From contig CM060732.1 of assembly GCA_030704615.1 (NCBI GenBank), forward strand, positions 7,006,001-7,070,000: DNA of 64,000 nucleotides, read 5' to 3'. The stretch's first letter is position 1, and each line of letters begins with the position of its first letter. The notes below the pieces were generated by a model. The model was not told the origin of the DNA and did no database searches. It saw only the letters and a list, made by a program, of their open reading frames with translations. Made by a program: the position numbers and the translations under genes. The stretch comes from Takakia lepidozioides. Its lineage: Eukaryota > Plantae > Bryophyta. Of the stretch, positions 8,538 to 63,379 are shown piece after piece.

Positions 8538-11500
8538 TTAGGAAATTACTTCTGCATCCTTAGGCACTGTTGCACCATCAACTTGCCGTAATTGTGCTAT
8601 TTCCATGCTTGTGTTGGGAATATCCTCATCAAGCTCGTCAAACTCCCACCCTTCTGTTTCTTGGGGAGTGCTGCTACCTGCTGTTTCTTCCAGTACTGCA
8701 TTCGCACCTTCTTTCTCCGAATCTGCAATTGATTTTGAAACCCCACCTACAACGTAAGGATCATTGTATTGTCTTACATCACTAACCAATGGTGGCTTGA
8801 CTGAAGCTGAAGGTGGGGCCAGTGCTGCCTCTCCAGAAGGCAGACTTCTCCCCAGTCTCGTCCAACCATGCTGCTCCATCTCCATTGGGGGCTTTTGCCT
8901 CGCCTCAAAGTCACTCCACAATTTCTCCACTTTCGCAAATATACTGTTGAGCTTATTAGTTGTTTCATCTATCTCCCTGCAACGCAACCCACAATTCATG
9001 GTCATAACAAAAAGGGGAAAGCAAGGAGTGAAGTTTGAAGAAACCCCCTATCTGTTTTCAAATGCAAAGGCAATACTAACGCACCCATCCTTGCCAAGTT
9101 GGTGGTGCGTTTGCACGTCATCTTTCAACTTGTTGATTGCCTTCAGTGCACGATCCACCTGGACCACACACACACGGTTCACAGGTTGACAAAGCATGAG
9201 ACCTGGGACACTCATGAACAATTGACATGCAGCTGACTTAGAATCCAGTTTATATATCCTGTGACCTCACCATCTACATTCCACTGAGACAGAAGCAGGG
9301 TGGTAAGAAAGGGACCGGTCTTGCCTATGATAGACATGTACTGAAGGAAGGGGAGTAAGAAACCTGTTCCTTGGCCTCCAAATACTTGTCCTGAATCTTG
9401 CGCTTGGCACTGACAATGTCAGCAATCACACCTTCCATCCCCAACTCCTGCATGTTCTCTCTGCAGTATTCGAAGAGGAAAGCTGATAAGCAAACATAGC
9501 ACATTTTCTAACGCGTCGGCATGGAACAAATTGATTTTAATCCTCTTTCATAATAACGCCTCCATGTACACTTTCTTGGAAGTGGCTAGATATGGAGGAA
9601 CGTCACTACCATTTGAGCTGACGTTAAACTCATCTTTCAATTTCTGAAAGTAGAGTTTTATTTGTCTTCAATTGTAGAGTTTGAAGCAAGCACCCAATTC
9701 AACATCCCCAAAGTCCAGATAGGTGTCACAAGGTCTAGTATATCAACGTACTGTTTGTGTTGCAGCGCTTCTAGTTCGTCCCCGCAGAACTTCAATCTTT
9801 TGAGGAAAAAGTTGAGCTCCTCCTACAACCAGCCCATCGGCCCTTTCTTACCTCTCATTATTACTTTTCTACAGTACTGCACACAAGTACCTCCTGGCAA
9901 TCCAAGGGTCTCTCACAGCAGCAGCTCACTACACTGTCTGGGAAAATACATGCAGATCCATAGATTTAACAGAACGGCTGAACACTTAAAGTGCAGAAAC
10001 AAGAGCGGAGAAACAAACCTCACGACATAATAAGTTGGATTCCGTCAACTGCAGGTATAGCTTCTTCGAGTCCTCATAAGCAGCCCTTTGGATTCACAAG
10101 GAAACAGCCAATCTGTAACATAGGGTGGAGAAAAGGAGAATAGTGCCACCAAGTCCAGAATAAGCAGGTACTATATGCTTCACCACAGCACCTAAGCTGG
10201 TGTCAGTAGGGGCGGAATAGTCCAATAACCTCCCTCCTTTCTATGTCTAGAGCACCAAAAGGACATTCAGAATGATGCTGAAGACTCCACACAAGTTAAA
10301 TTGATGTATGCATGATAAAATAAAGGGCAAAGAACAGAACTTGGTAAACGCCTTATGAACACATTATGATCGCCATCGTGCAGTACATGATCATCCAGAA
10401 GCAGACATGTACGTACTTGGTATCCTCGTCCCTTTCTTGACTACAATTAGACTGCAGGAGCCAGGTATCTTCCAGGAAGCTGAGCCATGTGCCCACTACA
10501 CTTGCTTCTGCCTTCTGTGCAGCCACAGCATGTGTGAGCTCTTCTTCCTGTGTTACATGCAACCACCATCCGTCTCTTTGTCACCATGAGGCAGTAAGCT
10601 GTATAGTTCAAAAGAAAAAACACAAGCTCAGCAGCTCATATTTTCCTTCTATCCCTCCCCACATAATTGAAGTCTTCGAACTTCATCCATAACTGCGAAA
10701 GACTCGAAGGTGGAAAATGGCACAGGGAAGCACACCTTGGCCGAGAGATGGGCAACAAGATGACTGCTGGCTTCATCAAACTGCTCTTTCTCTTCTTGTG
10801 TGTTGATGTGTCGTGCTGTTGCTGCTGCTAAAGCTGTCTTGACCTGTCAACCCGCAATCCCAGTACACTTCAGCATGCGCAGCAGGAAGCAATCAGAAAT
10901 AGATTGTACTCATAAGACGTTGTTTGCCGTAGCCTTGTGGCCATTGACCCCGCGCCCAGTTTGAGCGGGAACAAAAGGGACAGAACCTACCTCTGTCAGG
11001 GGCTGACGTTGGTAGTAAGACTTACCTCCATATAAAGAATTAATCCGGGTTTTCCAGATATCCTCTAGAAATCCCTTCACACAAGCATCAATCTGCTGTG
11101 TGTGATTTGCCCAAAAACTAGGCCTCAGGAGGGCCTGGGCAATCAGAAATAGAGAACCCACTACAATGAGATGGACAGCAAGAACCCCAGTAAGAGCAAG
11201 TGAAAGAGAGCAGAACACAGAAGAATGTAAGACGTTCGTTGCCGTAGCCTTGTGGCCATAGACCCCATGCCCGGTTTGGGCGGAACATAACATGAAAGAG
11301 AACAGAGGAAAGAAATTTATCATGTCTGCAGGAGGCCCAATGGGCTCATTGGACAGTAGAACACACAGGAATCAAGAACAAAAAAAAACCTCAAACATTG
11401 CCAAAGGCAGAGAGAGAACGAAGAAAAATAGAAAGAAAATTGTCAGGTCTCCAGGAGGCTCAAAAGGGCCTTTAGGACACAGTAAACCAAGAAAAGAAAC

Positions 11501-14500
11501 CAAAAGAACAGATCAAGCTGCAAATGTTGCTGAAGACACAGTACCTCATACAGGTAAGCTGCTAGCAGCATCCTCATAACTGAAGGCCTGTGCCAAGGAA
11601 GAAACAGAGAAGGACAAGGGGGAGAAAAGAGAGACGGAATAACTATTACATAAATGGAGCGTGCGGGACAGAGTAGAACCAAGAGAGGGACAGAGGGAAA
11701 CTAAAATAGCCCACAGGGGGTCTGATGGTCCATGGGATGAAAACAAGAAACCACTTCAAACACACCAAACTCTGAGAGAGAGAATGTACTCATAAGACGT
11801 TGTTTGCCGTAGCCTTGTGGCCATTGACCCCGAGTCCAGTTTGAACGGACATAAAGGGACAGAACCTACCTCAGTCAGGGGCTGACGTCGGTAGTAAGAC
11901 TTACCTTCATAAAGGACATTGATTCGGGTTTTCCAGATATCCTCTAGAAATCCTTTCACACAAGCATCAATCTGCTGTGTGTGGTTTGTCCAGTAACTAG
12001 GCCTCAGAAGGGCCTGGGCTTTTGGCTCAGCCTCGAGACTTTCAAAGTTGGTAACATAGGTACAGGCACAATTCTCTTGATAGATTGGAGGAGAGCTTCT
12101 CTCTGGTGAGAGTACCCCGGACAGTGAATCAGAAAATGAATATTGTCTTCGGGTTGCCCACATAACGGGCAATTGCACTCTCCCTTTCCTCTCTGCTTCT
12201 GTTTACTGTTCAAAGGTAGGCTTCCTGCCCTGAGTTTAAATTTCAGTCTGGTGCTGAGAGTGGGTAGATGCTTGAGGTCATCCATGATATCCTCCCCCAT
12301 GTCACAGACTGGAAACAGGTTCAGGGAAGTTTTCTGCCTAACTCTGAGATTGTACTCATAAGACGTTGTTTGCCGTAGCCTTGTGGCCATTGACCCCGCG
12401 CCCAGTTTGAGCGGGAACAAAAGGGACAGAACCTACCTCTGTCAGGGGCTGACGTTGGTAGTAAGACTTACCTCCATATAAAGAATTAATCCGGGTTTCC
12501 AGATATCCTCTAGAAATCCCTTCACACAAGCATCAATCTGCTGTGTGTGATTTGCCCAAAAACTAGGCCTCAGGAGGGCCTGGGCTTTTGGCTCAGCCTC
12601 GAGACTTTCAAAGTTGGTAAACAGGGGTACAGGCACAATTCCCTTGATAGAATTGAAGAGAGCGTCTCTTTGGTGAGAGAACCCCGGACAGTGTATCAGA
12701 AAATGAATACTGTCTTCAGATTGCCCACACAACGGGCAATTGCACTCTCCCTTTCCTCTCTGCTTCTGTTTGCTGTTCAAAGGTAGGCTTCCTGCCCTGA
12801 GTTTAAATTTCAGTCTAGTGCCGAGAGTGGGTAGACCCTTGAGGTCATCCAAGATGTCCTCCCCATGTCACAGACTGGAAACAAGTTCAGGGAAGTTTTC
12901 TGCCTAACTTCATTTTCATCAGACAATCATGGCAACAGACATGGCTTCGGACACTACAGCCTCTAAGTCAGATTTATCCAGCAGGGTCAAGACTTGCGGA
13001 TCCAGGTCCAGGTCCTTGAGGATCTCTTCTACTCTCTTCTGCCAGGACTTAGCCTGTTTGACAGGGCAGTCCTGTTTCCAAGATATAGAGTCAATTAACT
13101 TAGGATATCTGGTGTTGGGCATATGTTGCAGCTGACCCCACCATCTGACCTTGAATTCATCTCATCGGGAGCTTAAGGACGGAACGCCAAACTCACCCCG
13201 AACAGCCACTTTGGCTGTTTTGGAGCATGCTGACATACACTCCTTAAGCACCCCCACTTGAATGGATTCTAGAGACTTAGCCTGGTTGGAGTTATCAACC
13301 CATATAGCAGATCCGTACTCCAAGGCAGGTCTAATAACGCGACAAAGCATGGTTTTCTTAACCTCAGAGTTGACCCCTCTGCAGTGGAAAAATTTAGTGA
13401 GCCCCAGAGCTTTGCCCTTGCCAGTTTGAACAACTTTCCGGATATGTGCATCCCAATTACAATTGGAGGAGAACTCAATGCCCAGGTAAGTGTAGGAAGG
13501 GAGGACCAGGATCTCTTGGCTACCCCACTGCCACTTAAGATCACTTCCTCCCTCTCCTCTGTCGTTGAATGCTACCACTGCACATTTGCTGACATTAGCC
13601 TCTAGCCCCCAAAGATCAAAGTATCTCTTCGCGCAATCAATCAACTCCTGGAGATTGGTTGGAGTCTCCCCTATGCCTGCGAAGTCATCCGCAAACATAA
13701 GGGCTGGTATGGTGGTATCACCCACCCTTAACCCAAATCCCTCACTTTCCACATCCTCGAGGAGTTGATTGATGAAAACATTGAAGAGCAGAGGGGAGAG
13801 AGTACATCCTTGAGCTAAACCTTGGTCTATGTCAAAGAAGTTGGACTTCTGTCCGTTAACAGTGACACAGCTTTTGGTGTGAGCATACAAGTTGTGGACA
13901 ACTCTCCACATCTTTCCCTTGATCCCACAAGACCAGAGGCGGAACCATAGGCCATCTCTCCACACTGTGTCATAAGCCTTTTTGACATCCAGGAAAAAGA
14001 CATCTCTCTCAGGAGGGAGAGAGAGAGAGAGAGAGACAGGGACTTGAAGGGACAATGCCTTCACTTTGCCAAAACACTCAAGGTAAAGACCCTGCACCAT
14101 TAATCTGAACAGAACCACTCACCTCCTTTAGCTCTGCTTCAAGCTCTCGTCTTTTCTTCTCAAGCACTCGAATTTCTGCAGCAAGTGCCTGCAAAAGCCA
14201 GCCAAGGTAGATGCATCTGCATCAGATGTAGGTAAATATGATCAAGCCTCAAAAAAGTAGAAAAAGAGATTCAACCGAAAACCGGGAGCTACAACACAGA
14301 GGAACACACACACACATACAACAATGGAACTAACTGGATAGAGAAGGAAGGATCCAGAAGTGAAAAACACACATAGTAATGTGACATGGACTGAAAAGAA
14401 AAGCTAGGACGATTTGGCTTCAGGAAGGAAACAAGCATTTAACTCATGGTCTACCTTCTCAGATTCCGTCACTTCATGGGCTTTGGTGAATCGATAATTC

Positions 14501-17500
14501 ATAGCCTCCTGCTTTTGCTGCCTGCACCACATCATCCATGCAACCTGCTAAGCTCCCTTGTGGGATAAGAACCTCTACAAGAACAAACCTGACAAGCAGA
14601 AATGTGTGCCAAGCATGCATGTACCTCTTTTCCACAATCTGTTGTTGCATCTCTGCAACTGCCATGTTTAGTGTGGCTGTCAGTCCCTTCAACTTTTCCA
14701 CCTGCAAAAACAAGTGAAGAAATACATCACGATGAGAGGGGTTAATGAAAACAGAAGATTACAGGGAGACACAAACAAGAGACTGGGAGGTCAATGAAAG
14801 TAAATGAAGGGATCAAACTTACCTTCTCAGCACGGCCCTCAGGAGTGTCACCTGCATGTGACAGCTCCGTTTTTCTCTGCAAGCAGTTGTGTAAATGTGC
14901 CCCTAGCTGTAGAGTCTCCTCCAGCTGCAATAACATAAGGATATCACTCATGGCTACCTTGATGAATAGACCCAACACACTCCCACCTCAAAACACCCAT
15001 AACTTGGTGGAGAGCTTCAAATGGAAAGCAAGCAATAAACAAAGATTGCAAAAGAAGCAGTTCCCTGCACTGACAAAAGTCAATCTTTGGGAGACACAAA
15101 ATATGGAAGGTATCTAGCAACAGGCAAATACTTCTGGCTCAGCTATTGCAAATGACATCCCTGTCGAGCCAAAACAGAGCAGCTTCACATACAACAGACA
15201 TTCCAATCTTCTGGCCTTGCAGAAGATAATTCGCCATATTCTCACCTCAGTCAAACAAGATGAGACCCCTCCTGCTGAACCACCCTCAGCATTCTTAAGT
15301 GTGTCAACCACTCCCTGCTTCTCCACTATCTGTTGCTGAAAGTTGCCAATTTCTACGTCTAACCTACACATTCAACCATACCAGCGGACCATCACCATGT
15401 TTCTTCATATGACAGTAGATCTAGGGCACAAATGCACAGGTCAAGGGACTGCTTCCATCCACCTATCCCAAGCATGAAGAACGACCAGCAGTGTAGCACA
15501 TGTAGTTAGCAAGAATAATCAGATTCTGAGCATAATTCTTCTTTCTGGGAAATTTAGAGCACTCCTGCTCCTACCCACTGCTTTTCTCTTTTCTACTCTC
15601 TCAGAGGAAGGTTTGTGAGAGTTGGAAGACACTGCGGCATTCCTTAGTTCTGTGCCAAGTACAGCCCTGGGAACCCAGTGAGTTTGGCAACAGAGGCTAA
15701 CCTCAATGTCAAGTAAAAAGCAGAAGTAGCAGTGTCCCTCTCCAAAAGTGAACTGAATTTCCCGTGGGCTGTGGTAGCATTCCTAGTAATATACCACAAG
15801 TCACATACATGCAAGTGACCGGGAATAGTCAAGCTTAATATGCAAATGGGTCTGTTAATGCTGTCCGTGACAGAGCTTTGCCAGTCCATCTCAGAAGAGT
15901 ACCAGCCTCAACTCACTATCTCCAGTGGGGACTAAGGCTGGAAGGCTACCACTTGAGTTAATGGCCATTCAGTAGTCCATTCTCATCATACCACACTAAC
16001 TCCATGGTTCATTCATTCTTTCATTGTAGAGACATACCTTTCTACTTGCGAACTAAGCTTGAGGCCAGTAACAGCATCCCGAGCCATTTGCAACAAATCG
16101 TCCCGTTTTATCTGCCACCCACAACCAGGCCATCACACAGCCAATGAGTCTTGCTCTGCAAGAATGTGGGTAAAACACATACTCTTGAAACCGCAAAAAC
16201 TCCAATATAAAGCTCTGCTCTATCTCCCAATGTAAACAAAATGGTCACAAAGACCCACAATGACAAGTGCATATCCTCCCACTGGTATTTCAAATGAGAG
16301 AGATGAACCAGCACACACAGTAACTCATCCCTCCCACAGAAGGTTGCATACGATAGCTCTCCTTGTTCATTTCCCACCCAAAATCACACAATACAGCTCT
16401 TACAGGGTAAAATGTGGCAAAATATTCCCAGTAACACAGTCACAAGACTCAACACAAAGAAAAGGAAGGTAAATAACGACGAACAGGCAGAAATGGGGAA
16501 GGTAGCTGGACAGACCATCACTTCCTCCAAATAGCTAGAGAAAGCTTTGGAGAGGTCTTGAATGCTACTGATAATGGCATTGTGGAGCTCCTGTCCTCCT
16601 GCCAAACACAATCTACGACATAACCCAAATAACCCATCAGTCTCTGTCACCACAAATATAGGAAGTGTATTGCCCAGGTCAAAATGATCTCTGGCAGAAT
16701 CGACTTGTAGTCCAGTTTATGGCCACTCACAAGTCAATGGCAAGAGATGATATCCATGCAAATAACAATGATCTCCCCGGACTGGAATGCTGGCCCTTGA
16801 AATAGCAGGAAAGGTTCATGCGTTTCAAGTAGGTTTCAAAGAGAAAATTATTGCAGTGTGTGCTTAGACAAAAAGAACCAACACAAGAAGCTGCAGAACC
16901 TGGGCTTGGTCAGAGTGAAGATAGTAGGATCAGTTGCTCACCCAAACATTTCCAGCAACATGGACACCTCCTCCTCCTCTGGAGCTTCCAAAATCTGAAT
17001 CATCCATCATACATAGCTCAGCTCCGTCTTCTGCCATAAGCCTCTCTTCTGTAAACTGAGGTAAATGGTACACCCAGCCATCCTGATGTTGGTTGAACCA
17101 CTTGCACGCATGGATAATCTCTAGGAATCCAGAAGGATGTAGAGGTGTTCAGTGCAGCTGGATCTATTGTGCAGCTTTATGATTTTTCCATGGACAAGGC
17201 TGCTCCCCTTGCAATACTCTTTCCTTTGACGGTAAGATTATAATATTTTATCTGAGTAAACTTGTCGCTACCTACTGGGGGGCACAGATGCCCGCTGGAA
17301 ATTTGAAGTATTTGCAGGAAACGTGGGTATGGGTATATGCACATGAAGGCATCGGATTATATACCAAATAATTAGATTTGGTAACACTACATTCATGGCG
17401 GAGATTAGGTGGACCTAACAAACCTTAGGGAACCTTCATAGCATAAATATTACATAACCCCTACAGCAATACTTCCAAGCCAATGACAGCCCCATGAAGT

Positions 17501-42700: not shown

Positions 42701-45599
42701 GCCAGAATATTTAAGCTTCCGCCAAATTAAAATACACTTATTTAAACTTAACAACACATGGATCCCTGCGCACATGTTGTTGCAGTCATCCATGGTTCAC
42801 TCATCTGGGCAATTTTTCATCCGACAGTCGTCCAACATTCATCCAATGTTCATCCATTCCCTTTTACGTTTATCATAGATACATTCATTCGACAGTTTTT
42901 CATCGCACATTCGTGCCACATTGTCGTCATGGAGTCTGTCTGTCATCGGTCTGATGGAGAGAAGATTGCGCCGTTGTAGTGGAGTTTGTGTCCACGGCAA
43001 TAGGCCCACTTGTTCTCTCGCTTTTAGGGTCCGCATCAATAATCTGCTCACGCTTGGGGGAATCTACTCACGGATAAGGGAATCTGCTCACGGGTTCTGC
43101 TCACGCCTTTGCTGCCCTCACACCAAACACCATAAGGCAGGGGACGAGGGAAGTTGAAAGAGGAGGAAACACAAAAAAAAACAAGGGGTGTTAGGAGATC
43201 GGCGAGTGCGATGCCATGCCCTAAATCTGGACGGTGTGTATACAACCGCGTTTGGACAGGCAGATGCGTGCCACGTCTGCGCGAGTCTGCTCTACTGTGC
43301 GGGTTCGGCGTGGTCTGGTGGACGATATGCAGACCCCCGGAGGCGACGCGGGCGGGCCCGACCGCGGGTGGGGTGACTGCTGTCCCGCGGCCACGTGCGC
43401 CGAGGGCGTGCGGGGCTGCCGATCGCGCTGCGGGGCTGTCCTTGGGGGGGGGGCTGGGAGACCCCCCGGCCGTGCGTCCTGGCCCGCACGTGAGACATAA
43501 ACTCCCAATTATTCAAAAATGAGAGGCTATAATATACACCCTAAAATAAAAAATAAAAACTTAGAGATCAAAATACTTACATTTCTAAACAAAAGCATTT
43601 TTGGATAAAAGCAAAATAAAAGTGAAATGTTTTTAGTTTCTAAAATTCATGAGATTTATTGGCTCCTCCATGAAGGGAATACCAGGCATCAGTGCTGAAA
43701 GGAGGGAAGATCTTGATGTACCTACACCAGATAATACTTGCACTAAATAATACCTGTGTCAAGTTATTTTACCACTAGTGTGAAACTAGCTAGGAAATAG
43801 CTAGCTTTTACATATGACATTTGGATTGGCCCAAGTGTCAATCCAGGGGTCAAAGCAGATTTAGGCCCTGGAGTGGTTATCTTCACGGCAAGCGCGGGAG
43901 GCTCATCTTTCTCGAGTTGAGCCTCACCGCGCCTAGCTATGGCGCCGTAGTGTGGATTCCCCATGGCGTGGGGTGCACTTGGCTTGACTTGTATTTGAGT
44001 GATGAGGTTATATATGCATGAGTTTATGCTTCAGCTTGTGAGCTCGCATGAGCTCGTGCTTGTATTCTTCTTCTTTATCACTCGAGAAAGATGAGCTCGT
44101 ATCTATGAGTGCTAGATACGAGTTAGTTGTAGCACTTGTGGTTTTTGCTGAGAATGAGAGAAACCATTGTTATGCAAGGAGCACCGTGAGCTCTTAGTTG
44201 TTAGAAGCGGAGGCGATGTGGGTTACGAGGTGGTAGACCTTGGCATTCGATCTTCAGCTTCAGAGATGAAAGCACCATGCTGCAGGTAATTCCAGAGCAC
44301 CTTGATGGTTCCAGATTGTGTACATGCATGAGCAAGCACGATTGGGAAGAGGACCAGTCAAGAGCAGGTTATAGTGGCTTGGTGGCAAAGCGAGAACTGG
44401 ACTTGGGGAATGCGAGCTTTCATTGTGTGAAGGATTGCAAGACCAAGCGAAAGGGCTGATTTTGCTTGGGGCAAATCAGTGCACTTTGTGGAGTATGGTG
44501 AGATTGGGTTTCAATCTCGAGCTTCAGCATTGAGAGGGCTTTGTCATGGCAAGAGCAGGGCTGGATCAGGAGCTAAGAGGTGCGGCAAGGCCATGGAATG
44601 TGCACCTAGGGTTTCAGAGCTTGGAAGAAGAGTTCTTGCACCACAAGAGAAGTGTCTTGTGGCTGGAAATGAAGCCTTAGGGTTTCAGGAGCTTGGCAAA
44701 GGCTATGGAGTGCTTAGTCTTGTCATAGAGAGCATCAAGGAGCCAAGGAGCCAAGATAGGGGGCTGATATCTCTTGTGTGAAGAGGTTTGCATGTGTGAG
44801 CATGTATTCAGCTCATTGAAGCTTCCATCTTCAAGCTTGGAGGGCAAGCAAGGAAGAGGGAAGGGCTGACTTCCCTAATGTGAGGGCATGTATGTGTGGA
44901 GCATGCTATCAGCACTAGTAAAGGCTTGCACTTTTAGGTGTGGGAGTGCAAGAAAGGAAGGAGGGGGCTGGTTTCCCTGTAGGCATGTAGAGCATGCTTT
45001 CAGCCTGCTGAAGCTTGTATTATCAGGTTTGTGGTGCAAGAAATGAAGCAAAGGAGCTGATTCTCTTATGGTGAGAGTGGGGCATGTGTGAGCATGCCTT
45101 CATCAGCCCATTGAGGCTCTTGTTTTCAAGCCTTAGAGAGCTAGAACGGAAGGTCTAGGGCTGGTTTCCACTTGGAGTGAAAGAACAGCACTTGTAGGGC
45201 CTATGTGAGTTGGGGTTTCAACTTCAAGCTTGAAGGGAGCGCAACTCTTGAAGCCCAGGTGTAGAGGGCTGGAATAGGCTCTAAGACAGATGCTATGGCC
45301 AATGAGGGGAGTGCTTGAATGAGTGCTCACAAGGGCTGGGAACCAGCATGGCTTGGTTGTTTGCCATTGAGTTTAGTGGCGTGTTTGGGGAGGCTAAGTG
45401 AGAAAGAAGCTTGGTTTGTGGCAACCACCTCATGGTTAGGGCTACTATGGTGGTGTGTGGGAGCCGAAAGAGCAGGATACCTTGCTGATTTCCTCAAGCC
45501 ACCATAGCTCGGTGGAAAGAAGCCTAGAGTTAAGAGACACAAACCCAGCTTGGCGTGGCTACCCCTTGGAGAAATGGCTAAACTACTGCCAGAGCGGCC

Positions 45600-46330
45600 A
45601 TGTGTGGGGCTGTGACAGGCTGTGGCAAGCTGTGACAGGCTATGCCCAGTGGCCTGTGGGGCTGTGACGGCTGTGACAGGCTTGTGGCAAGCTGTGACAG
45701 GCTGTGATGGCTGTGATGGGCTGTGACAGGCTGTGCCCTGTGCCCTGTGGGGCTGTGACGGGCTGTGTCAGCTGTGACAGGCTGTGCCCAGTGGCCTTTG
45801 GGGCTGTGACGGGCTGTGACAGGCCGTGCCTGAGGCCTTTGGGCTGTGACGGGCTGTGAGGGGCTGTGACAGGCTGTGCCCTGTGCCCTGTGGGGCGGTG
45901 ACGGGCTGTGTCAAGGTTGTGGCGAGCTGTGACGGGCTGTGACGGGCTGTGACAGGCTGTGCCCTGTGCCCTGTGGGGCTGTGGCAAGCTGACCGGTGTG
46001 ATGGGCCTGTGAGGGCTGTGACAGGCTGTGCCCTGTGCCCTGTGGTGCTGTGACGGGCTTGTGTCAGGCTGTGACAGGCTGTGCCCAGTGGCCTTTGGGG
46101 CTGTGACGGGCTGTGCGGGGCTGTGACAGGCTGTGCCCTGAGGCTATGGGGCTGGTGACGGGCTGTGGGACAGGCTGTGTGAGCTGTGACAGGCCTGTGC
46201 CCCATGGCCCTTGGGGCTGTGGAGGGGCTGTGAGGGGCTTGTGACAAGGCCGTGCCTGAGGCCTTTGAGGCTGTGACGGGCTTTGTGAGGGGCTGGATCA
46301 TGCCGTGCCCATTGCCTTGGGCTGTGACGT
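45600..46330 (+). repeat. GGCTGTGAC(A/G) minisatellite within the LTR, with further copies to about 46770
   Basis: Dozens of 9-11 nt units with higher-order GGCTGTGCCCTGTGCCCTGTGG blocks. Confidence 0.92.
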
Positions 46331-47794
46331 GCTTTTGTTCTTTGACAGGCCGTGCCCTTCTTCCTTTTGTGCTTTAGTGGCTTTGGGTTTTCCTTTTTTA
46401 CAGGCCTTTCCCCTCTGTCCTTTGAGGGCTTTTCCTTGCTGTGAGGGTCTTTTCCAGAGGGTCCATTCTTTTCTTTTCTTTCCTTTTCTTTTACCCAATT
46501 CTTTGCCTGTTTGGGACTGTTCTTCTGTTACTTTCTTTCTTGTCTTTTCCCGTCCGTGCCCCATGGCCTTTGGGGCTGTGACGGGGCTGTGAGGGGCTGG
46601 GTACACTGCCCGTGCCCATGCGCTTTTGGGGCTGTTCCATTGGTCCTTTTTCTGGAGGGTGCACCTGCCTTCTGAGGCCTTTGGAGGCTGTGAGGGGCTG
46701 TGAGGGCTTGATGGGCTGTTGACAAAGGCCGTTCCTTCGGCCTTTGAGGCTGTGAACAGTCTGTGAGGTGCCTGCGCCCGACACGACCGCCGCTGTTACT
46801 ATTCCCCTTTCCTGTGGGATTTGACTGCCTGAACCAGTGAGCTTTTTTGGTCCTGTGCTGGTCTTTTTTTTCCCTTGTTTACCTGTGGACGCCTGGCTGA
46901 CTCTTTTCTTCTCTTTTTGTCACTGCCTAAGGATCCTTTCATGTGGTCTGGAAGGCCGAAGTTTTGAAGCTCGTGGAGGGCGGTTTGGAGAGTATCTTCA
47001 TGATATTCCCATGGTCATGCAAGTGAGGATAGAGAGGAGAGGGCAGAGTGTTGGGAGGAGAGCATGCTGGGGTTAGGCAGTGCTTTAGCTTCTCTTCCTC
47101 GTAGTTTCCACCCTCTCATTAGGCCAAGACCTTTCCGTAGGTGGAGGCAGAGTCAGTCCGGGTTTGGGCTGGGGTGTCCTTGCATGAGGCAACACCGTGG
47201 AGTTTGTTTTTTGGTGTGGGGGAGTTGTCGTTCGGATTTCTTGTTTTTGGATCCCCCATACCTGCATGCTTGACTGTGCGCCATGCTAGTTTTGTGGGGC
47301 GCTTTGTTTTTAATAGGTGATTGGTCCGGATTTGATCACCGGCCAGTCCTAGAGGCATGCTGTCGATGGTGAGGGCTGGGGTGATGACACAGCCAGATCA
47401 TCATTGTTTCTCCTGTGGTGAGGTTGGAGGTGATGACCAGCCAACCATAGGGTGCTTGCGGGTGGAGGCAGGTACCAGGTTGTAGGCTATGTTGGAACTT
47501 AGTATTCCAAACCATACCGCAACAGGTTCTCTAACCCGGTTACTGTGGGAGAAGGGGTTAGGGACATGTCATGACCGGTTGAGTGTCAACACGAGGTGCC
47601 ACTATTTGCTGGGGACAGTGCCGGTTCGAGCACTAGTGATACTAGTGGGTACACGAGACTAGGTGTGCGGTTTAGGCCACCTTCCCCCTCCTGTGTCTTC
47701 CACGTAAGGTTCTGATTCGGATTGTGAAATCAGTAGGGCTCATACCGGACGGCGGTGCAAGTGTTTCTTCTTTGCCATTAGTATTGTGGACACA

Positions 47795-49273: not shown

Positions 49274-49773
49274 NNNNNNNNNNNNNNNNNNNNNNNNNNN
49301 NNNNNNNNNNNNNNNNNNNNNNNNNNNNNNNNNNNNNNNNNNNNNNNNNNNNNNNNNNNNNNNNNNNNNNNNNNNNNNNNNNNNNNNNNNNNNNNNNNNN
49401 NNNNNNNNNNNNNNNNNNNNNNNNNNNNNNNNNNNNNNNNNNNNNNNNNNNNNNNNNNNNNNNNNNNNNNNNNNNNNNNNNNNNNNNNNNNNNNNNNNNN
49501 NNNNNNNNNNNNNNNNNNNNNNNNNNNNNNNNNNNNNNNNNNNNNNNNNNNNNNNNNNNNNNNNNNNNNNNNNNNNNNNNNNNNNNNNNNNNNNNNNNNN
49601 NNNNNNNNNNNNNNNNNNNNNNNNNNNNNNNNNNNNNNNNNNNNNNNNNNNNNNNNNNNNNNNNNNNNNNNNNNNNNNNNNNNNNNNNNNNNNNNNNNNN
49701 NNNNNNNNNNNNNNNNNNNNNNNNNNNNNNNNNNNNNNNNNNNNNNNNNNNNNNNNNNNNNNNNNNNNNNNNN
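49274..49773. other. Assembly gap (500 N)
   Basis: N run. Confidence 1.
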
Positions 49774-52700
49774 TTTAGCTCTTCTGTGCCCAACCGTGGT
49801 GGTGACTTGCGCCTTGGATAAGAATTGAAGATGACAGCGCATGTTGGATATGTGCGTGAATCCTGTCTGCTCCCAGAAAGCCACCTGCGAAGCCTGCGAA
49901 AGAAGAATGGCCGAACAATGTTATAATTCGCAAAAACAGGCTGTCTCAAACACTCTTGGCGAGTTAGAGGCATTCGCTGCGTGAGATTGCCTCTCATGCC
50001 ATGCCAGGCCCTCCATATAGATTGACCCCATGAGGTAGGGTTGTATGAGCTTGCTCCATGGAGTGTCTCTATGCTTGATGGCTCTTGGGATCCACTTTGC
50101 CAACAATGCCTTAAACTGCGCCGAGGGGTCAATAATACCTAGTCCACCTTTTTTCTTTTCTTTTGGCACAATTGATCCCATGAGAGCAAAGCCCTTCTTG
50201 ATGGGGTCGTAGATGTAGCTCCCCATATGAAATTTCGAATGAGCGTCTTAATTTCCTTGACCATGGCCTCATCTGGGTCCCAAACTGCCGTAGAAAACCA
50301 ATGGAATGCCTCCCAAACCTGGTTGGCAACTAATGCTCTTCCCACAATGGAGAGCATTGCAACACTCCAGAAAGCCATGTTTTTCTTGAGAGTTGCAAGC
50401 ACATCCTTGAAGCGGTCATGATTTGAAATGTTTAGGCCTATTTGAGCCCCCAGCAGCTTGTGCGTTCGGCCATCTTGCAGCCACCCAAGTCCTATATCTG
50501 CCCCCCATGGCTGACAGTGGGTTGCTGTTGCTCCATTATGCAGCTTGGACAAGATGCCCATGGATTTTTTCCAATTCACCTTGAGCCCAATAGCCAAGCA
50601 AAAGGTGTGGAGAATTTGGAGTGCCTTGTCAATGTTGGCCTTTGTGGAGTTGTCAAGCAATAGAGTAGTGTCATCTGCGTACATTGAGAGTTTCAGCATC
50701 TCCAGGGTCAGCATGGGCAAGTGAAGGCCAATAATGTCTTGCCTGTAGTGTAACATGTAACCCAGCGAGTCTGCCGCTATGAGGAAGAGGAAGGGTGCCA
50801 GGGGGCAACCCTGCCGCACCGATCTGGAAATGTGGAAGGGCTTAGATATAACCCAATTAACCATGACCTTGCTAGACGCTGCATGCAAGAGGATATGGAC
50901 CCATGTCAGGAAAGGCCCCCCCAACCCTGATTTCTCCATAGCCCCTTCCAGAAAGGTCCAATCAATGGAGTCAAAGGCCTTTTCAAAATCTAGCATTAAG
51001 AAGGCCAATGGCTGGCTGTTTATTTCTGCTCTGTGAAGGGCCTCATGGGCCAACATGATGTTGTCTAAGATCATGCAATCTTTGAGAAAGCCAGTCTGCT
51101 CCTTCCAAATAATTTTCGGGAGGAGGGGCTGCAACCTCAAGGCCAGGGTCTTTGCAATAATCTTGTAAGTTGATTTTAGCAAAGTGATTGGCCGGTAGTT
51201 GGCCATATCTTCTCTATCTCCCTTCTTAAAGATTAGAGTAATGAGACCTTCCGCCATCTGCGAGGGCATTATTTTTTTTTCCAGAATATCATTTGCCATA
51301 AGGAGGAAGTCCTCTCCAATTGTTTGCCATAGTGCTTTAAAAAGTTCAATTGGGAGACCATCCAGTCCTGGCGATCTTTGGGATGCCATAGAGTTGACCG
51401 CCTGCCCCAATTCATACACTGACAGGGGGGCCACCAGATTTGATTTGTCTAGTTGAGAGAAGGAGCAGGGGATGTGGTGTAGCAGGGCCGCTGTTGCATC
51501 TTGTTTCTGCTGCGAAGCATCCTGCCTTTGAAACAAAGCTTGAAAATATGAGGCTTCTGCCATGATTTTTGGTTTATCTACCAAATGTCCATCTGCATCT
51601 CGCAAAGCTGGGACCATTGTGGCAGCTCTCCGCTGCGCAGCCTTGACAAAGAAATATCTATTCATCTTTTCCCCTTTGAGACTCCAATTGACTCCGACTT
51701 TGACTCTGGAGAATTGCCCCTTGGCATGTAACAGCGTGGAGAGATTTCTCTTGGCATCCTTGTATGCAGTTATGGTACATGCGCTCCCTCCAGACTCGAC
51801 TGCAGCTTAAACTGGTAGACCTTCAAGCACTTAGTCAGAGCCTTTTGCCTTCTAGTATTGTCTTCAGCCTTCTCCCTTGAAATGACTTTACAAAGGTCTC
51901 TTAACATTTCCATCTTCGCCAAAAATCTGGCAATGGGCGAGGCTAGCTGGGTGGAAGCTGATTCCCAGACATTCTGAAGGGTCTGTATGATGAAGGGGTC
52001 TTGCAACATAATGGGGTTTAGCTTGAAAAAACCTCTGCCTCTCACCCTGGACTCGGGAGTGTTGAGCATCAGCTGCACCATGGCATGGTCAAACTCCGGG
52101 AGGATGGGCTGCAGCGGGACACTGGTTGACCGAGACTTCAAAGTGTAGGAGCAATAAAATCTGTCCAACCGAGCCTGGCACAAGTGAGGCGGGTCCCTGT
52201 TGTTTGACCATGTGAATTCAATTCGCCCTGGCCTAGAGACGAAGCGTCGAGCAGCCCCACTAACAAGCACATGACGTCCCAGGTGTTTTTTTCTGTCATG
52301 GAGAGACCATGCACCAATCTCCCAAGCCTGTCTCTTTTTTCCTCCACCATATTGAAGTCGCCACCTACCAGCCAGTGCTGGAGATGATGGCGCTGCTGCA
52401 TGTAATTTCTGATATGGTTCCAGAGGTCTATCCTGTCTTCCTCCCCATTCAGAGCATATATGTTTAGAAAACCCACCTCCCCCAAAGATTGACCTATGTT
52501 CAAGACAAGAAGCTGCACTCTGCCTTGCAACCAAATCTCATGAGAGACAATGGATTGTTGTAAGGAGGGGGAAGCAAGGATTGTTGTGCCCCCTCTGGAA
52601 TCCGAGATGGTGGGATTCCAGAAGGTTGTGGCCGCATGCCAAATGGAGGCACCAAAGGAAGCTATTTTTGGTTGATTCAATTTATGTTCTTGCAGAAAGA

Positions 52701-52815
52701 TAATATTGGAGCCACGTAACAGAGTGGAGGCCCATGCTCTAACCTTTGCCCTTTTGGGGGCAGAGTGGTCAGAGCCGAGACCTCTCACATTCCAGGAGAC
52801 AAGAGACAGATTCAT
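49774..52815 (-). pseudogene. LINE ORF2 (AP endonuclease and reverse transcriptase), disrupted
   Basis: MNLSLVSWNVRGLG, IFLQEHK, LVGGDFN, FTWSN...ARLDRFY, SPGLDGLP, NYRPITLL, LDFEKAFDSI, VRQGCPLAP, SMYADDT, KKGGLGIID; split across ORFs 52138-52995, 51770-52534, 50139-51665, 49921-50226. Confidence 0.92.
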
Positions 52816-52849
52816 GTGGGTGTGACTATCAGGCCCACGCTGTCTGCGT

Positions 52850-54457
52850 GACTTGATGGCCATTGTGGGAGGAAGAAGTACTTTGGACGCTTGTCGGATG
52901 GGGGTGGGGTGGAGAACCACTTGAACCCTTGTGGAGGATGGATCAAAACATGGAGCTGACAGGTGAACACAATCGTTGCCTTTTTTCTTTTGCATTTGTT
53001 TTGAAAAGATATGAAGTGGGTCCCTCCGTCTCTAAGAACTGAAAACATGTCTGCAGAGATGTCCCAGGCTAGAGCTTTTGAAAGTCCTGAGGGAGAGGGA
53101 TTGTGGGGAGGATGGAAGGCTTGCTGAGTTCCACCAGGCTGGTAGGATTTTCTGCTTCTGAACACTGTCCAACAGCAAAGTCCATACCCGTTTACAGTCT
53201 GAGTGGTCAAGCACATAGAAGAAGAGGGGGAAGTAAGTAGTAGAGATGCTCACCGGTGGGGGCGAGTCCACTGTCTCTTCCGGCAGCAGAAAGGTGATGG
53301 AGTGATCTGCTGCAGCATTGGAGGATGCGTTGAAGTGGTTTGTATTTGCCAGCACCATCTGTCTATGAAGAAGCCTGAGCCTGTTGGTTTTTTGGGGGAC
53401 ACCTCTTCTATCAATTCGGAGCCTCTTTTTCTTTTCTTGGAAGGCAGCATGTCAACCATGGTTTGATCATCTGATTTTGCTTGAGCTTCTTGCACCTGCT
53501 GCGTTTGATTGGCCTTGGAGGTATCCAGTGGCTGGGAGGAGCCCTCCTCCTTTCTTGGGATCTTGATGTTTGGGCAGTCTGCCTTGATATGCCCTTCAGC
53601 ATTGCAGTGGTAACAGATCACCGAGAGGACCTCCTCTTTCACTGCTACCACAATGTACAAGTCATCCAAGGTGGGCAGTTTGATAGAGGTGCCAATGGCT
53701 GCAATTTCAGGCATGAGCACAATGATCTTGGGGATTCCAATGTCCTCACTAACCTGAGAATGTGTGACCTCGGTATCGACACTGAGAATTTTGTCCTGAG
53801 CTGGCTCCAGAACATTAATTGCCCCTATGAATGAACCAAAGCTGGCACCTATCTCTGGAAGCGAAGTCAGATACGGGGAGGTAGGAAGGGGATGGCAATG
53901 ACTCTCGGCTTCCACAAGATGCCTTTCTTGTGTCCCCAATCCTGAGTCCATCGAAAGATGTGGACTTTAGAGACGGATGTCTGCGTGTTGAAGCGCAAAG
54001 CCTTTTCTGCATCTGCGGGCGAGCTGAAAATGATTGCGTAGAAGCCTTTCCCCATTGAAAGGCTAAAGTGTTGTGCCAATCCACCAGCAGTTCCTAGGTG
54101 CTCGATAATCCAAGTACGAATTGATTTTCTCGTCCGCGGCTTTCCAGGGAAGTACAAGAGGATGCCTGTCTTTGTTAGCTTTTGCACTTGAGCCTGCAAC
54201 TTAGCTTTGTTCAAATTTATGACAGGTTGCTCCTTGTCTTCTTGCACCATTGTGTCCTCCCATGCGTTCTTAGTCATCATTGGTGAGGGTGGAGGGGCAG
54301 AGGCTGAGGGGCCCTTTCCTAGAATGGAGGCAGCATCGACTTGCAACATGGAGGATTTCCTGGTCCAAATCTGATTTTTGGCTTTCGCAGCTGGAGACAA
54401 ACCTCCGGACACTCCTCCACGTCTCGTCTTCCTGGATCCACGACCTCTGGAATCCAT
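52850..54457 (-). pseudogene. LINE ORF1 (RRM-like region and CCHC knuckle), frameshifted
   Basis: MGKGFYAIIFSSPADAEKALR...FRWTQDW; EIGASFGSFIG; CYHCNAEGHIKADC. Confidence 0.85.
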
Positions 54458-57388: not shown

Positions 57389-60300
57389 ATGGGATGTAGG
57401 CTATTTCTGCAGGGAAAGTTTGATGAAGCAGAGGCTTTTGTAGAGGAGAGGGTAAGCACGAAGGACAAGGAGCCGGGTGCAGTGCCAATATTCACGCACT
57501 GCCATGCTGTCATTCTCTTTGCTAAGGCTGGCATTTCCGGTACTGAGGAGGACAGGTGAGTAAGTTGATTACGTCTCCCTTCCATGTGGTTGCTTATCTT
57601 GTTCCACTCCGATATGGACAACTATTGAGGAGAAAACATCAGAAAGTCATCTTGTTAATGTGGCAGGGTGCTACCCTCATGAGAGTGTAGGGAGAGATGT
57701 GTACTATTGATGTTTCCCTGTGGACATTGGTTATGATGGACCTTTCAGGAATTAGTCCAAGCAGGATATCAACCCTCTCTGAGGCCGTCCCTGAGGTGTC
57801 TACTCACTAGGCTGCCCGCAACTGATGACAATCCTGGTGCAGGGACCTGCATGTTATTTTATTGGTTTGCATTGATATCATCCTCAAAATCACAATGGTC
57901 TTTCCCTTTACCTTCTACAGATGTGGTAAAAGGCTTTGATGCACTTCCAGACACCATAGTGTGAAAAGGGCAAGAAAGAGAAAGGGGGTGGCAAGGGGGC
58001 CATGGCTGCCACATGTGCATATGATCCAAGAATGTACTCATAACACGTTGTTTGCCATAGCGTGGCCATAGACCCCGCGCCCAGTTTGGACGGAACAAAA
58101 TTGAGCAGAAACTACCTTTGAGAGGGGCTCACTCCGTTAGTGTGACTTACCTTGATAGAGGCACATGATCAAAGAAAGAGAGACTAGGAAATAATGTGGT
58201 TGTTGAGGAATAAAGTTTGTATTGCAGAAGGCAAGCAATAGAGAAATTGAATGATGCATCCACCATGGCGGGAGAGCATATACCAAAGCAAGGCTGGGTG
58301 CAATGCATTGCAACATGGGGAATGGGCTACTTCAGCACCCCAGCTCCCAAAGCTGATGACATTTCTGAAGAAGAGCTCAGTTGGTTGGTGAACGCTTGTG
58401 CTTGAAAATTTGAACACTAGATTGGTATGACAGTAGGAGATTGTCTATGTAGGAGCCGTCCAGCTTTATGTGGTCCTGCCTGTATCTGAAAGTTGGAGCC
58501 CTTTTGTTGGTTGCAGACTCAGATATTATCCAAAAATGATAAAAATTGTAATATTGGTCCCTAGGAAGTGATCCTCAAGTTTTGTACTGCAGTCGCATTA
58601 TCGAAGCTGAGTCCACATATCTGTCGGCATTACTTTGCTTTTTCGAGGAATCAATGTCTGCCTTCTTCAGGGTAAGTACTCTCTTCCATTTCTCATTCTT
58701 CCACTTAGATTCTGTTTCCAAGGGAATGTCTGTGCGAAGATATTTTGATTTCCTTGTTGGATCCATGTTCTGCAAAAGACTTGAGATTGAGTAGTTTTTT
58801 CCAGGAGTAAAATGGTCTTGTGTGTGGCACACAAATTTTATTGATGTTTCATGCCTTGAAAAACCATACTGGATAAGGGCTTAGAAGCCATGTTCCTGCC
58901 TATCCCTCTCTCCTTCCCAATAGATAAACATTCAAAAGGATTTATGTTCAAATGTCTTGTGCCGGCGGCCTTATTGATACGTAAAGCAATCCAAGGTTAC
59001 AAATATTGCCATGGCATACTTCAGCGTCAGGTAAGTTTCCTTCGTCAATACTATACCAAGCCAAATCACACGTTCTCTGATTGAGATTTTTGGCAGGGAT
59101 ACTTCTTAATTCGCCCTAGGTGACCACCAACGTCATTTCGATGTTGTTGCAAAGAAGTTAAAAGGCATCCTCTCATGTGTGCAACAGCAACTTGCCAGCA
59201 GGAGTGAGCACGACGTAGGTGCAGTGAAACTAGGGTTTGGTGGTTTCAGCTTGGCCATCTCCTTGCTGCCTCCCAAGCTCTTGCGACTTCTGTCTGTGTT
59301 GGGTTTTCCTTGTGACCGTGATGCTGGGTTACAAGCCATTGATCAAAGCCTACGAGGTGGCGGACTTCGAGCTCCTCTGGCTGGAGTGTACGTCATTATC
59401 CTTTCTTCCAGTTTTGAGAATATGCGTTGCTCGGGCTATGTCAAGCTTAGGTGCTTTTAGAGAAATTCCTCACTGGCAAAGTGAAGGTGTTACTCAGACA
59501 TAGGCACCCTACACAATAGCCTACAACAATTGCCTACAAATGCTTTTCCAATCAAACCATGTAGACTGTGCTCTTGTGCTCATACAATCATGTAGCCTGC
59601 TATGGTGGAGACAGGCTTTAAAGAAGACGTAAGCCAGACTGGCATGTGCTCTGAAACCTTTTTCTTGTTCTTGAGCCTTATCATTCAAAGACTTTGGTTA
59701 ACTGAAAAAGTGGGCACTCAAGGGTCGTTCAGCCCCCACTCCCACTGCTGCTGCTGTCCCCACCACAGGGTCAGCCCCTCGTGTCCCGACCCCCCCGCCC
59801 TCAAGGCAAAGGGCCGCGACAGAGGTGGGCATTGCTATTGCGTTCCAGAACTTCAGTTTGAGTGACTTCAGTAAAGTGAGGCGGCCCAAACATTGGGCAC
59901 TGAATTTTCTGTGCCAATGGATGTTCCCCTTGGGATGTCATAGCTTGTAAAAACCTACAATGGTGAATGTTTGAAGAGAGTGATTTGTGACAGAGATTGA
60001 ATAGAGACAGCAATTTATTACAACATCATTATACACAGTAAGACCTCCCTTGTAGCAGCAGTCAGCACATGAGAACTAAAAACTTCAAGGTTTTTAACCC
60101 TCAAGCACATGTTTTTTTGATCTAAACGCTCATTGAAGGTTATGCATATTGTGTTCAGGCTACTCCTGTCATATCACGTGATACTGCCTTCCTTTTTCTC
60201 AATACCTCAGGTACGCCTACACTTGGCCATGATCACAAGTAGAACTTCATATGGCAATGCCCATAGATCTTGACAAACTCGGATTTGGTGCATTGGTCAA

Positions 60301-61704
60301 AACACTTGATTGCGGTCTGGTGTTTGGCGACAATTCATACATTGATGCTGATGCACAAAGTTGTGCTGAGTTCTCTGGCTGTTGTTACCTGCTCATTACT
60401 TTAGGAACGCGAGCAACATGTCACAAGTGCAGAGCGGGTTCTCTCTTTTCTACAAGATGCCTATCCTGGCAGCTTCTTCCTAAGGTAGTGCCCACTTTAC
60501 TTTCTAAACATGTTGGAAGGTTTTACACATCTGTCGAAACATGTTTGAACTAACTTTTTGTGAGACTTCAAGTTGAATTCCTCTCTGCAAATGGTCGTTG
60601 CCTGTTAACACCAATGTCCCACATTAAACTTTGTAACAATTCCAGGGGCAGGGCCATTCCCTCAACCCTCAAGTCTTGGTACCCACCTTGACCTTGGGAA
60701 GTGCTTCAGTCTCTGTACACAATCTGGAGACAGCCCAAGATACACTCAAATACCCATTTCTTTGTCAACTCGCCACCCTCTTTAGCTCCTCTTATCATGG
60801 GGCATGTTCAATGACCAAGGCTACTGCCATTTGAGTATTGGAAATGCAGTATGTTCAAGTTTTGCCAATTAGTGCACGGCCTTGTTGCTTCAATTCTAGT
60901 ATTACTAGTGGGTGCGGGTGGCTGCAGCTTCTACAGGGGCCGCTTGCAAAGATTGAAGCAGGATTTGACAGGCTCCTTGGACTGTTTCTTGAAGCTTGAG
61001 GAGGTGAGGTCACCCGTTACCGTTCCTAAGGTTGGGAGTGACCCAAATGAGGCAAAGAGGGAGAGTTTCAGATGTATTCGTTTCTTGCAGCCTTGGGGTC
61101 CTTGACCCTTCCGGCCAATGGGCACAACCAGATACAGAGGTAGGCTACCAGCAGTTGCGCTTACCTGCCAGTGTATATGCATGTGTATGTTAGTGCTGGG
61201 CACCCAGCTTATTGGCTGGAAGAGTAGTCCAGACGAACCTTCAACATCCACAAATTTGTTTGGTATTTTGGGGACTGGCAGGGCTTAAATATTCCAGCTG
61301 AGTCAAAATTCTTCAAGCTTCGCCATGCATGGGTCTACGAACTTGGCTTGAGCCACATGTTGCAGTTTGAGGTGAGCACTCACCCATTCAAGATATGGTT
61401 CATTTTTCATCCTAAGATATGCAAGGAGCATTAAGCTGCTCATTACCTGAGAGTAGTTAATACTTCAGCCTAGGGCTTGATAAATTGTGAGGGGAAGTTC
61501 TATGCATATAGCCCATGGTGCATTAGGGGGTCTTCTTGGAAGGATTTTGATTGTATAAGGTGAGTATCTTGAGGAAGGATAACATAGTGTGTCAACCCAC
61601 TTACTGAAGTGATTGGAAATGGTCAGTGGGAGGCAGCAGAGAAGTACTGGGAGGAGCTGGAGCAGGACAGCGTGTGGTCACGTGCCTTCTTTGCCTACCT
61701 GCAT
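57389..61704 (+). CDS. TTC39: TTC39/IML2-like tetratricopeptide-repeat protein, first 10 exons (continues downstream; start uncertain)
   Basis: Exons about 57389-57555, 58228-58383, 58593-58671, about 58965-59030, 59188-59387, 60159-60210, 60405-60484, 60928-61003, 61282-61371, 61627-61704. Motifs LFLQGKFDEAE, IIEAESTYLSALLCFFEESMSAFFR, GAVKLGFGGFSLAISLLPPKLLRLLSVLGFPCDRDAGL, LLLSYH, YPGSFFL, YELGLSHM, WSRAFFAY match TTC39/IML2 blocks (recall). Confidence 0.78.
58032..58160 (-). mobile_element. Older 3' fragment of the RTEX-like family, copy E, in TTC39 intron 1
   Basis: ATGTACTCATAACACGTTGTTTGCC...GACCCCGCGCCCAGTTTG; TSD GCATATGATCCAAGA (58017-58031) vs GCACATGATCAAAGA (58161-58175). Confidence 0.85.
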
Positions 61705-61788
61705 GTAGAGCCTTTATCCCTTCTTGCCTTCCTCCCTCTCTGTTTGGACGCTACAAAGTTTCTTTCTTTCCTTCTCTATCAAACCAAG

Positions 61789-63164
61789 GGTGATACCACC
61801 ATACCAGCCCTTATGTTTGCGGATGACTTTGCAGGCATAGGGGAGACTCCAACCAATTTCCAGGAGTTGATTGATTGCGCGAAGAGATACTTTGATCTTT
61901 GGGGGCTAGAGGCTAATGTCAGCAAATGTGCAGTGGTAGCATTCAACGACAGAGGAGAGGGAGGAAGTGATCTTAAGTGGCAGTGGGGTAGCGAAGAGAT
62001 CCCGGTCCTCCCTTCCTACACTTACCTGGGCGTTGAGTTCTCCTCCAATTGTAATTGGGATGCACGTATCCGGAAAGTTGTTCAAACTGGCAAGGGCAAA
62101 GCTCTGGGGCTCACTAAATTTTTCCACTGCAGAGGGGTCAACTCTGAGGTTAAGAAAACGATGCTTTGTCGTGTTATTAGACCTGCCTTGGAGTACGGAT
62201 CTGCTATATGGGTTGATAACTCCAACCAGGCTAAGTCTCTAGAATCCATTCAAGTGGGGGTGCTTAAGGAGTGTATGTCAGCATGCTCCAAAACAGCCAA
62301 TGTGGCTGTTCGGGGTGAGTTTGGCATTCCGTCCTTAAGCTCCCGACGAGATGAATTCAAGGTCAGATGGTGGGGTCAGCTGCAACATATGCCCAACACC
62401 AGATATCCTAAATTAATCGACTCTATATCTTGGAAACAGGACCGCCCTGTCAAACAGGCTAAGTCCTGGCAGAAGAGAGTAGAAGAGATCCTCAAGGACC
62501 TGGACCTGGATCCGCAAGTCTTGACCCTGCTGGATAAATCTGACTTAGAGGCTGTAGTGTCCTCAGCCATGTCTGTTGCCATGAGATTGTCTGATGAAAA
62601 TGAAGTTAGGCAGAAAACTTCCCTGAACTTGTTTCCAGTCAGTGACATGGGGGAGGACATCTTGGATGACCTCAAGGTCTACCCACTCTCGGCACTAGAC
62701 TGAAATTTAAACTCAGGGCAGGAAGCCTACCTTTGAACAGCAAACAGAAGCAGAGAGGAAAGGGAGAGTGCAATTGCCCGTTGTGTGGGCAATCTGAAGA
62801 CAGTATTCATTTTCTGATACACTGTCCGGGGTTCTCTCACCAAAGAGACGCTCTCTTCAAATCTATCAAGGGAATTGTGCCTGTACCCCTGTTTACCAAC
62901 TTTAAAAGTCTCGAGGCTGAGCCAAAAGCCCAGGCCCTCCTGAGGCCTAGTTTTTGGGCAAATCACACACAGCAGATTGATGCTTGTGTGAAGGGATTTC
63001 TAGAGGATATCTGGAAAACCCGGATTAATTCTATATATGAAGGTAAGTCTTACTACCAACGTCAGCCCCTGACAGAGGTAGGTTCTGTCCCTTTTGTTCG
63101 CGCTCAAACTGGGCACGGGGTCAATGGCCACAAGGCTACGGCAAACAACGTCTTATGAGTACAA
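61789..63164 (+). mobile_element. 5'-truncated RTEX-like LINE, copy F, in the intron after TTC39 exon 10
   Basis: Near-identical to copy A (LMFADDF to GVNGHKATANNVL*); 14-bp TSD TCTATCAAACCAAG at 61775-61788 and 63165-63178. Confidence 0.93.
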
Positions 63165-63379
63165 TCTATCAAACCAAGATTCTCCCTGTCCTCTAGGAAG
63201 CCTATTGCCATTGGGTGGACTTGATACGGGAGTACATTACTGTCTCTGTGACTAAATGCCGGCCTTGTGACCTTGTGTCTTTGTTTGTTTCGACCTGAAG
63301 CGCTTTGCTCCAGGTAAGGTAGTGCATTGGATTTAGTTGGAAAGCTTGGGGCCTTTCCCTCTTTCGAATATGCCTGCAC

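Follow-up and report, generated by a model that had tools for sequence, protein, structure and literature searches.

The 64,000-nucleotide stretch of Takakia lepidozioides DNA analysed here (the window) contains six copies, lettered A to F, of one family of long interspersed nuclear elements (LINEs). The limits of the copies were established by a search for the shared terminus, by printed junctions, by self-comparison and by a sensitive search, and are provided in Table 1 along with the other features. Five of the copies (A, B, C, E and F) had been reported in an earlier reading of the same DNA, referred to below as the original prediction, and the sixth is the short and decayed copy D. Taken as a whole, the evidence makes it probable that these are front-truncated members of an abundant land-plant LINE family of the RTE-X clade, in which a short UCU or (UC)n end of the RNA pairs with the nicked target to prime reverse transcription.

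Table 1. Copies of the LINE family, their junctions and target-site duplications (TSDs), and further features; positions are those of the window, except for motif sites in related loci (L001 to L003), which are numbered within the respective locus.
Feature	Position	Strand	Remarks
Copy A	10904-11138	(-)	235 bp, front-truncated; 99.6% identical to copy C; 3' end TATGAGTACAA
Copy D	11225-11292	(-)	~68 bp, decayed; found by self-comparison and sensitive search
Copy B	11784-12339	(-)	556 bp; TACAT subfamily; 92% identical to copy C
Copy C	12350-14004	(-)	1655 bp; from reverse transcriptase motif FFLDVKKAYD to 3' end; several frame breaks
Copy E	58032-58160	(-)	129 bp; diverged, 81% identical; 3' end TACAT
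Copy F	61789-63164	(+)	1376 bp; end of reverse transcriptase through CCHC finger to 3' end
TSD of copy A, TCTATTTCTGATTGC	3' at 10889-10903, 5' at 11139-11153	(-)	15/15 match
TSD of copy F, TCTATCAAACCAAG	61775-61788 and 63165-63178	(+)	14/14 match
TSD of copy E	58017-58031 and 58161-58175	(-)	13/15 match
TSD of copy B, TCTCAGAGTT	3' at 11768-11777, 5' at 12340-12349	(-)	10/10 match
TSD-like stretch of copy D, TCTGT..TCTCTTTCA	11201-11221; 5' partner 11293-11306	(-)	tentative
Extra TCTCTC between end of copy B and its TSD	11778-11783	(-)	read as short tail
Extra TCT after end of copy D	11222-11224	(-)	probable
5' junction of copy C, (TC)10 then CCTCCTGAGAGA	14005-14036; (TC)10 at 14017-14036	(-)
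Stop codon TGA, copy F	63156-63158	(+)
Stop codon TGA, copy C	12356-12358	(-)
3' motif, window	63120-63142
3' motif, locus L001	9800-9825
3' motif, locus L003	8350-8375
3' motif, locus L002	8350-8375
Candidate 3' hairpin, GTCAATGGCC-ACAA-GGCTACGGC	63120-63142	(+)	overlaps codons for ...VNG...A.A
L1-like LINE	49774-54457	(-)	ORF1 with CCHC zinc knuckle, apurinic-type endonuclease, reverse transcriptase; 508-aa reverse transcriptase ORF at 50139-51665

All six copies lack the 5' part of the element, the point of truncation being different in each, and at none of the six 3' ends is there a poly(A) tail or other A-run. The terminus TATGAGTACA(A/T) is common to the five copies reported earlier; copy D closes with ...CGTCTTACAT, that is ...CTTACAT, after an internal deletion of six nucleotides (ATGAGT). 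The reading frame ends in ...ATANNVL, with a TGA stop 6 nt short of the last base of the element. The original prediction had described five copies that end without poly(A), with a stop codon about 6 nt from the end and TCT at every junction, and each part of this description was seen again.

TCT follows the 3' end of the element at all six junctions in the window, whereas it accounts for 0.0196 (1.96%) of the trinucleotides of the window, so that six out of six would arise by chance with p ~6e-11. The TSDs of copies A, F, E and B all start with TCT, which indicates that the TCT pre-existed in the target and is not simply a part of the element. For copy D, a 7-nt indel in the duplication makes the TSD tentative. 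An explanation of the shared TCT by chance, or by segmental duplication of a single insertion, has nothing in its favour except that the window contains so few copies; it is refuted by TSDs and truncation points that differ between the copies, by the chance value given above and by the hundreds of separate contigs in four sequencing runs with the same junction (see below), and its probability is negligible.

On examination of the flanks, the bases directly 5' of the 5' TSD were found to be GTTC, CTTC, TCTT and TTCC, and in copy B they are ACAA, which is the end of copy C. The share of pyrimidines in the 12 nt upstream of the cut is 100% for F, 83% for E, 75% for D, 50% for A and 42% for B. The original prediction of TSDs preceded by pyrimidines is upheld by the duplications of A, F, E and B and by the pyrimidines present in four flanks, but it does not extend to the ACAA before copy B, nor to copy C, for which there is no TSD. 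One way to account for these sites is an endonuclease that alone decides where the element lands, nicking at AGA^R (Y^TCT on the element strand), with an RNA that ends in ...GUACAW and takes no part through pairing. The position of TCT within the TSD, and hence already in the target, agrees with such an endonuclease, as do the pyrimidines that precede the site in four of the five cases with a defined TSD. However, the extra TCTCTC of copy B and the extra TCT of copy D lie outside the TSD, and copy B, along with many stacked copies elsewhere in the genome, has inserted after ACAA with no upstream pyrimidines.

The site of copy B is instructive in another respect, as it falls exactly at ACAA^TCT, the 3' end of copy C. 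Since the two copies are only 92% identical, copy B represents an independent insertion and not a duplication of copy C. Insertion re-creates a usable site: each new copy leaves a TCT right after its own 3' end, which is a new landing site, and this leads to head-to-tail stacks. In a few copies, B among them, there are also additional TC units that the target did not supply. The spacer after the element end at the B/C site (11768-11783, 12340-12349) has the form (TC)nAGAGT(T), and the same spacer was observed in one contig of the first run that apparently derives from another locus. It could be a chance resemblance, a favoured target, or flanking DNA that a prolific source copy has brought with it; the recurring spacer TCTCAGAGT was not over-represented in the window.

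In order to view these junctions on the scale of the genome, Logan contigs of four public runs (two of DNA and two guessed to be of RNA) were aligned to 300 bases centred on the 3' junction of copy F. In the first run, over 8,000 contigs match this region, which shows the family to be very abundant, and its size is reflected in thousands of distinct junction contigs. The commonest point at which contigs cease to match copy F is after 63167, that is after TCT (146, 20, 26 and 35 contigs across the four runs). The second class stops after 63163, where the TACAT subfamily diverges, and the third at 63169, while no stop at 63164-63166 was present among the six classes listed per run in any of the four runs. 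Without any preference, 63164 would be expected as by far the largest stop class. The prediction that TCT would mark the junctions genome-wide is in this way confirmed, with contigs of all four runs ceasing to match after TCT and not after TACAA.

The consensus past TCT reads CTCTCTCT..., i.e. (CT)n, with an agreement of only ~0.4, which implies that a sizeable minority of copies continue in more TC units. No A-run was seen past the junction in the genome-wide consensus sequences, and, as at the six copy ends in the window, the A-rich tail of L1-type poly(A) LINEs is absent. The term "tail-less", used in the original prediction, is accordingly correct as far as poly(A) is concerned, but it is overstated in view of the additional TC units of copy B, probably those of copy D, and the (CT)n consensus. 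Many joints return from 63163-63170 to within the last 130 nt of the element through short and often TC-rich spacers; these are head-to-tail stacks like that of copies C and B, and they are common genome-wide.

Two further observations were made on contig depth. The last ~60 nt of the element (63101-63164) are covered 2-10x deeper than the preceding 90 nt in all runs, which might be due to numerous very short copies, to subfamilies of which only this part aligns, or to a non-autonomous partner with the same 3' end, as is known from Ectocarpus. The segment at 63180-63314, past the TSD of copy F, is a high-copy repeat, the summed depth of contigs being high in each of the four runs.

The (CT)n consensus also brings in the possibility of a microsatellite-specific LINE, one that would require a (TC)n target in the way that Kibi requires TC arrays or Koshi TTC arrays. 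The (TC)10 at the 5' flank of copy C and the TC-rich B/C site agree with it, and there is a documented precedent in Kibi and Koshi, fish LINEs that target TC and TTC microsatellites (PMC3812793). The targets of A, E and F, however, are not arrays, and that of D lies in a pyrimidine-rich tract (TCTATTTCTG.., TCTTTGATC.., TCTATCAAAC.., TCTGTTCTC..). With four of the six targets outside arrays, strict targeting of this type does not fit, and the low agreement of the consensus likewise counts against it.

As the open reading frames (ORFs) of the window copies are broken, they were searched piece by piece. Between the reverse transcriptase (RT) and the stop codon, the only Pfam matches are RVT_1 and, over the CCHC finger, a weak one to zf-RVT, and no RNase H was found after the RT in the Pfam search of the window copies. 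The truncation point of all six copies falls within or after the RT; in relatives (the P0002 locus and locus L004), Exo_endo_phos is located directly upstream of the RT. A search of a protein atlas returned generic RT clusters only and no clade, whereas a word-based protein search led to 42 relatives, several of them from Ectocarpus. Among the 42, P0005 shares 41% identity with the window RT over 290 aa (E 3e-73), and by eye it is nearly identical to the printed stretch of the published RTEX-1_Ec32. Matches to other types of elements are weaker, with E 3e-15 for human L1 ORF2p, E 1e-13 for R2, and 31% identity over 110 residues (E 1e-8) for the RT of an L1-like LINE in the same window. Judged by these similarities, the family would belong to the RTE-X clade, with RTEX-1_Ec32 as its closest named relative. 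The features characteristic of RTE-X elements, namely the absence of poly(A), a very short 3' untranslated region (UTR) and a simple repeat that matches the TSD, are found here as well, in the form of a 6-nt UTR and TCT/(TC)n. Kibi and Koshi are members of the Tx1 clade, and in this comparison, which contained no Tx1-clade reference, the window RT came nearest to RTE-X; along with the nature of the targets, this renders a microsatellite-specific LINE very improbable.

The 3' ends of relatives were studied at four related loci, L001 to L004. A tblastn search that used the C-terminal 141 aa as query missed the C-termini of the relatives, whose 3' ends were located by eye through the motif GGTCAATGG. 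Loci L001 and L004, which belong to one assembly, end in ...TCTTGAGTA(TTA)n, i.e. TGAGTA(TTA)n, with 23 and 3 units respectively, and their TSDs, TTAATCAAA and TATTTATCCAACTTGGAG, are in register with the (TTA)n tail, starting with TTA or TAT. The 3' end of L003 is ...TGAATATA(TTA)3, and that of L002, an Ectocarpus copy, is ...GGGTACG(C)6; TSDs were not found for L002 and L003. Throughout the lineage, hardly any sequence separates the end of the ORF from that of the element, and the opening bases of the TSD follow the simple repeat of the family concerned. For an endonuclease acting alone this poses a difficulty, as relatives with RTs 34-48% identical differ in the start of their TSDs, each matching its own tail, so that the specificity of the enzyme would need to have changed repeatedly. 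Such co-variation of tail and TSD start among relatives favours pairing over repeated changes in nuclease specificity, an argument already put forward for RTE elements and their short interspersed nuclear elements (PMC6007223), and we regard an endonuclease alone as quite unlikely.

All these elements have in common the motif GGTCAATGG-(7 to 9 nt)-GCTA(C/G)GGC, placed ~20-45 nt from the end, which is retained from a land plant to a brown alga and other eukaryote assemblies despite the low identity of their RTs. In an RNAalifold analysis of the window copies, three other relatives and Ectocarpus, this stretch was modelled as a hairpin with seven invariant pairs and one covarying pair. The hairpin stretch is also the deepest-covered and least variable part of the contig alignment, and it can be put forward as a candidate recognition element.

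With these observations, a mechanism of target-primed insertion can be proposed. The protein would bind a conserved 3'-terminal stretch of ~60 nt in the RNA that encodes it, and its endonuclease would nick the target. A cut just 5' of TCT on the element strand gives a primer that ends in ...AGA-3', the site reading Y-rich^TCT on the element strand. The primer would then pair with UCU or (UC)n just past ...GUACAW in the RNA, and reverse transcription would begin there. This supposes an RNA that runs a few bases past ACAW as UCU or (UC)n, and a protein positioned by the conserved 3' region. Pairing would take place mostly at the first UCU, for which reason new copies look tail-less and their TSDs start with TCT, whereas pairing further out would account for the short TC additions of copies B and D. 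Some preference of the endonuclease may also contribute, and it is compatible with pairing. The original prediction had offered both a sequence-selective endonuclease and an RNA end that pairs with the target; these were the right candidates, and the evidence leans to RNA pairing over an endonuclease that cuts before TCT.

Several points weigh against the proposed pairing of the RNA end. Sequence alone cannot separate an endonuclease preference from RNA pairing; we infer the 3' end of the RNA, and the contigs of the two guessed-RNA runs cannot show transcript ends. Copy C has no recognisable TSD. There is no full-length copy in the window, the endonuclease being seen only in relatives, and the assignment to RTE-X rests on pairwise similarity to the nearest named relative. 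The hairpin is nearly without covariation, overlaps coding sequence and folds no better than shuffles, with z-scores of -0.6 to +1.0 for single-sequence folds of the last 70-83 nt.

A variant of the above mechanism is an element without any tail of its own, for which the priming TCT would come from the TSD flanking the source copy through a short transcriptional read-through. Although we consider it unlikely, it has distinct consequences. The choice of target would be inherited through flanking DNA and not through the sequence of the element, and a different flank could re-programme the start of the target, which would explain the occurrence of TTA, C and TCT among close relatives.

The window has other features apart from this family. 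The L1-like LINE at 49.8-54.5 kb was considered as a member of the same family and rejected, its RT matching at only E 1e-8. The zinc-knuckle ORF1, the endonuclease and the RT of this L1-like LINE are found at 50139-54457. Its ORF2 runs into an assembly gap (49274-49773), which is situated within or next to that ORF; a Pfam search on both flanks of the gap gave no match. No copy of the RTE-X family is located within 8 kb of the gap, and the conclusions drawn here are independent of it. Self-comparison also revealed inverted repeats at 2495-4180 and 44036-45634 (~1.7 kb, 81-93% identical, 40 kb apart), which probably represent a different repeat that is present twice, once in each orientation. 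The region 45603-46335 is G-rich and T-poor, and contains internal repeats with many overlapping self-matches at 77-81% identity.

The original prediction had suggested that the mechanism may be uncharacterised. This suggestion finds no support, as both the match between tail and TSD and a model of pairing have been published for the RTE clade (PMC6007223), and RTE-X elements have been annotated in Ectocarpus (PMC12477816). The Ectocarpus families, named RTEX-1_Ec32, RTEX-2_Ec32 and the non-autonomous RTEX-N1_Ec32 (PMC12477816, supplementary files 2 and 3), possess a single endonuclease-RT ORF, a (C)n 3' end and C-rich TSDs; the non-autonomous partner shares the last 60 bp, and copies can be in tandem (PMC12477816). 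The Takakia family resembles RTEX-1_Ec32 in its RT (41% identical to P0005), its CCHC finger and the C-terminal ..VNG..A.A.. end. It further shares with the Ectocarpus elements the GGTCAATGG..GCTAGGGC motif near the 3' end, the conserved last 60 bp, tandem copies, the lack of poly(A) and a simple 3' repeat with a composition that matches the TSD. The two differ in their tails and TSD starts (TCT/(TC)n in Takakia as against (C)n and C-rich in Ectocarpus), in their hosts (a land plant and a brown alga), and in the visible tail, which in Takakia mostly consists of just three bases shared with the target.

In LINEs of the RTE clade and their short interspersed nuclear elements in plants and animals, the TSD opens with a base that agrees with the microsatellite-like 3' tail (Nishiyama and Ohshima 2018, PMC6007223), and the RTE tail has been proposed to guide the choice of cleavage site and/or to prime by base pairing (PMC6007223). 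Like these elements, the present family has a pyrimidine tract upstream of the site (T in those elements); unlike them, it is of the RTE-X and not the RTE type, and the match covers three bases (TCT) instead of one or two. Like Kibi and Koshi it is associated with TC-rich sequence and does not show the usual interspersed pattern of poly(A) insertions. Unlike them it is not restricted to arrays but inserts at individual TCT sites in ordinary DNA, and its RT is closest to RTE-X.

No prior description of the present Takakia family was found in the literature searched. Its clade, the absence of poly(A), the near-absent 3' UTR, tandem stacking and the match of tail and TSD are all documented in relatives, and no new kind of mechanism is revealed. 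An extremely abundant family that lands in pyrimidine-rich TCT sites shapes the build-up of repeats and creates stacked arrays. It provides a clean, three-base example from a land plant of the rule by which the LINE tail matches the TSD start, and with relatives that use TTA or C in the place of TCT, swaps of tails between them could separate RNA pairing from nuclease specificity.

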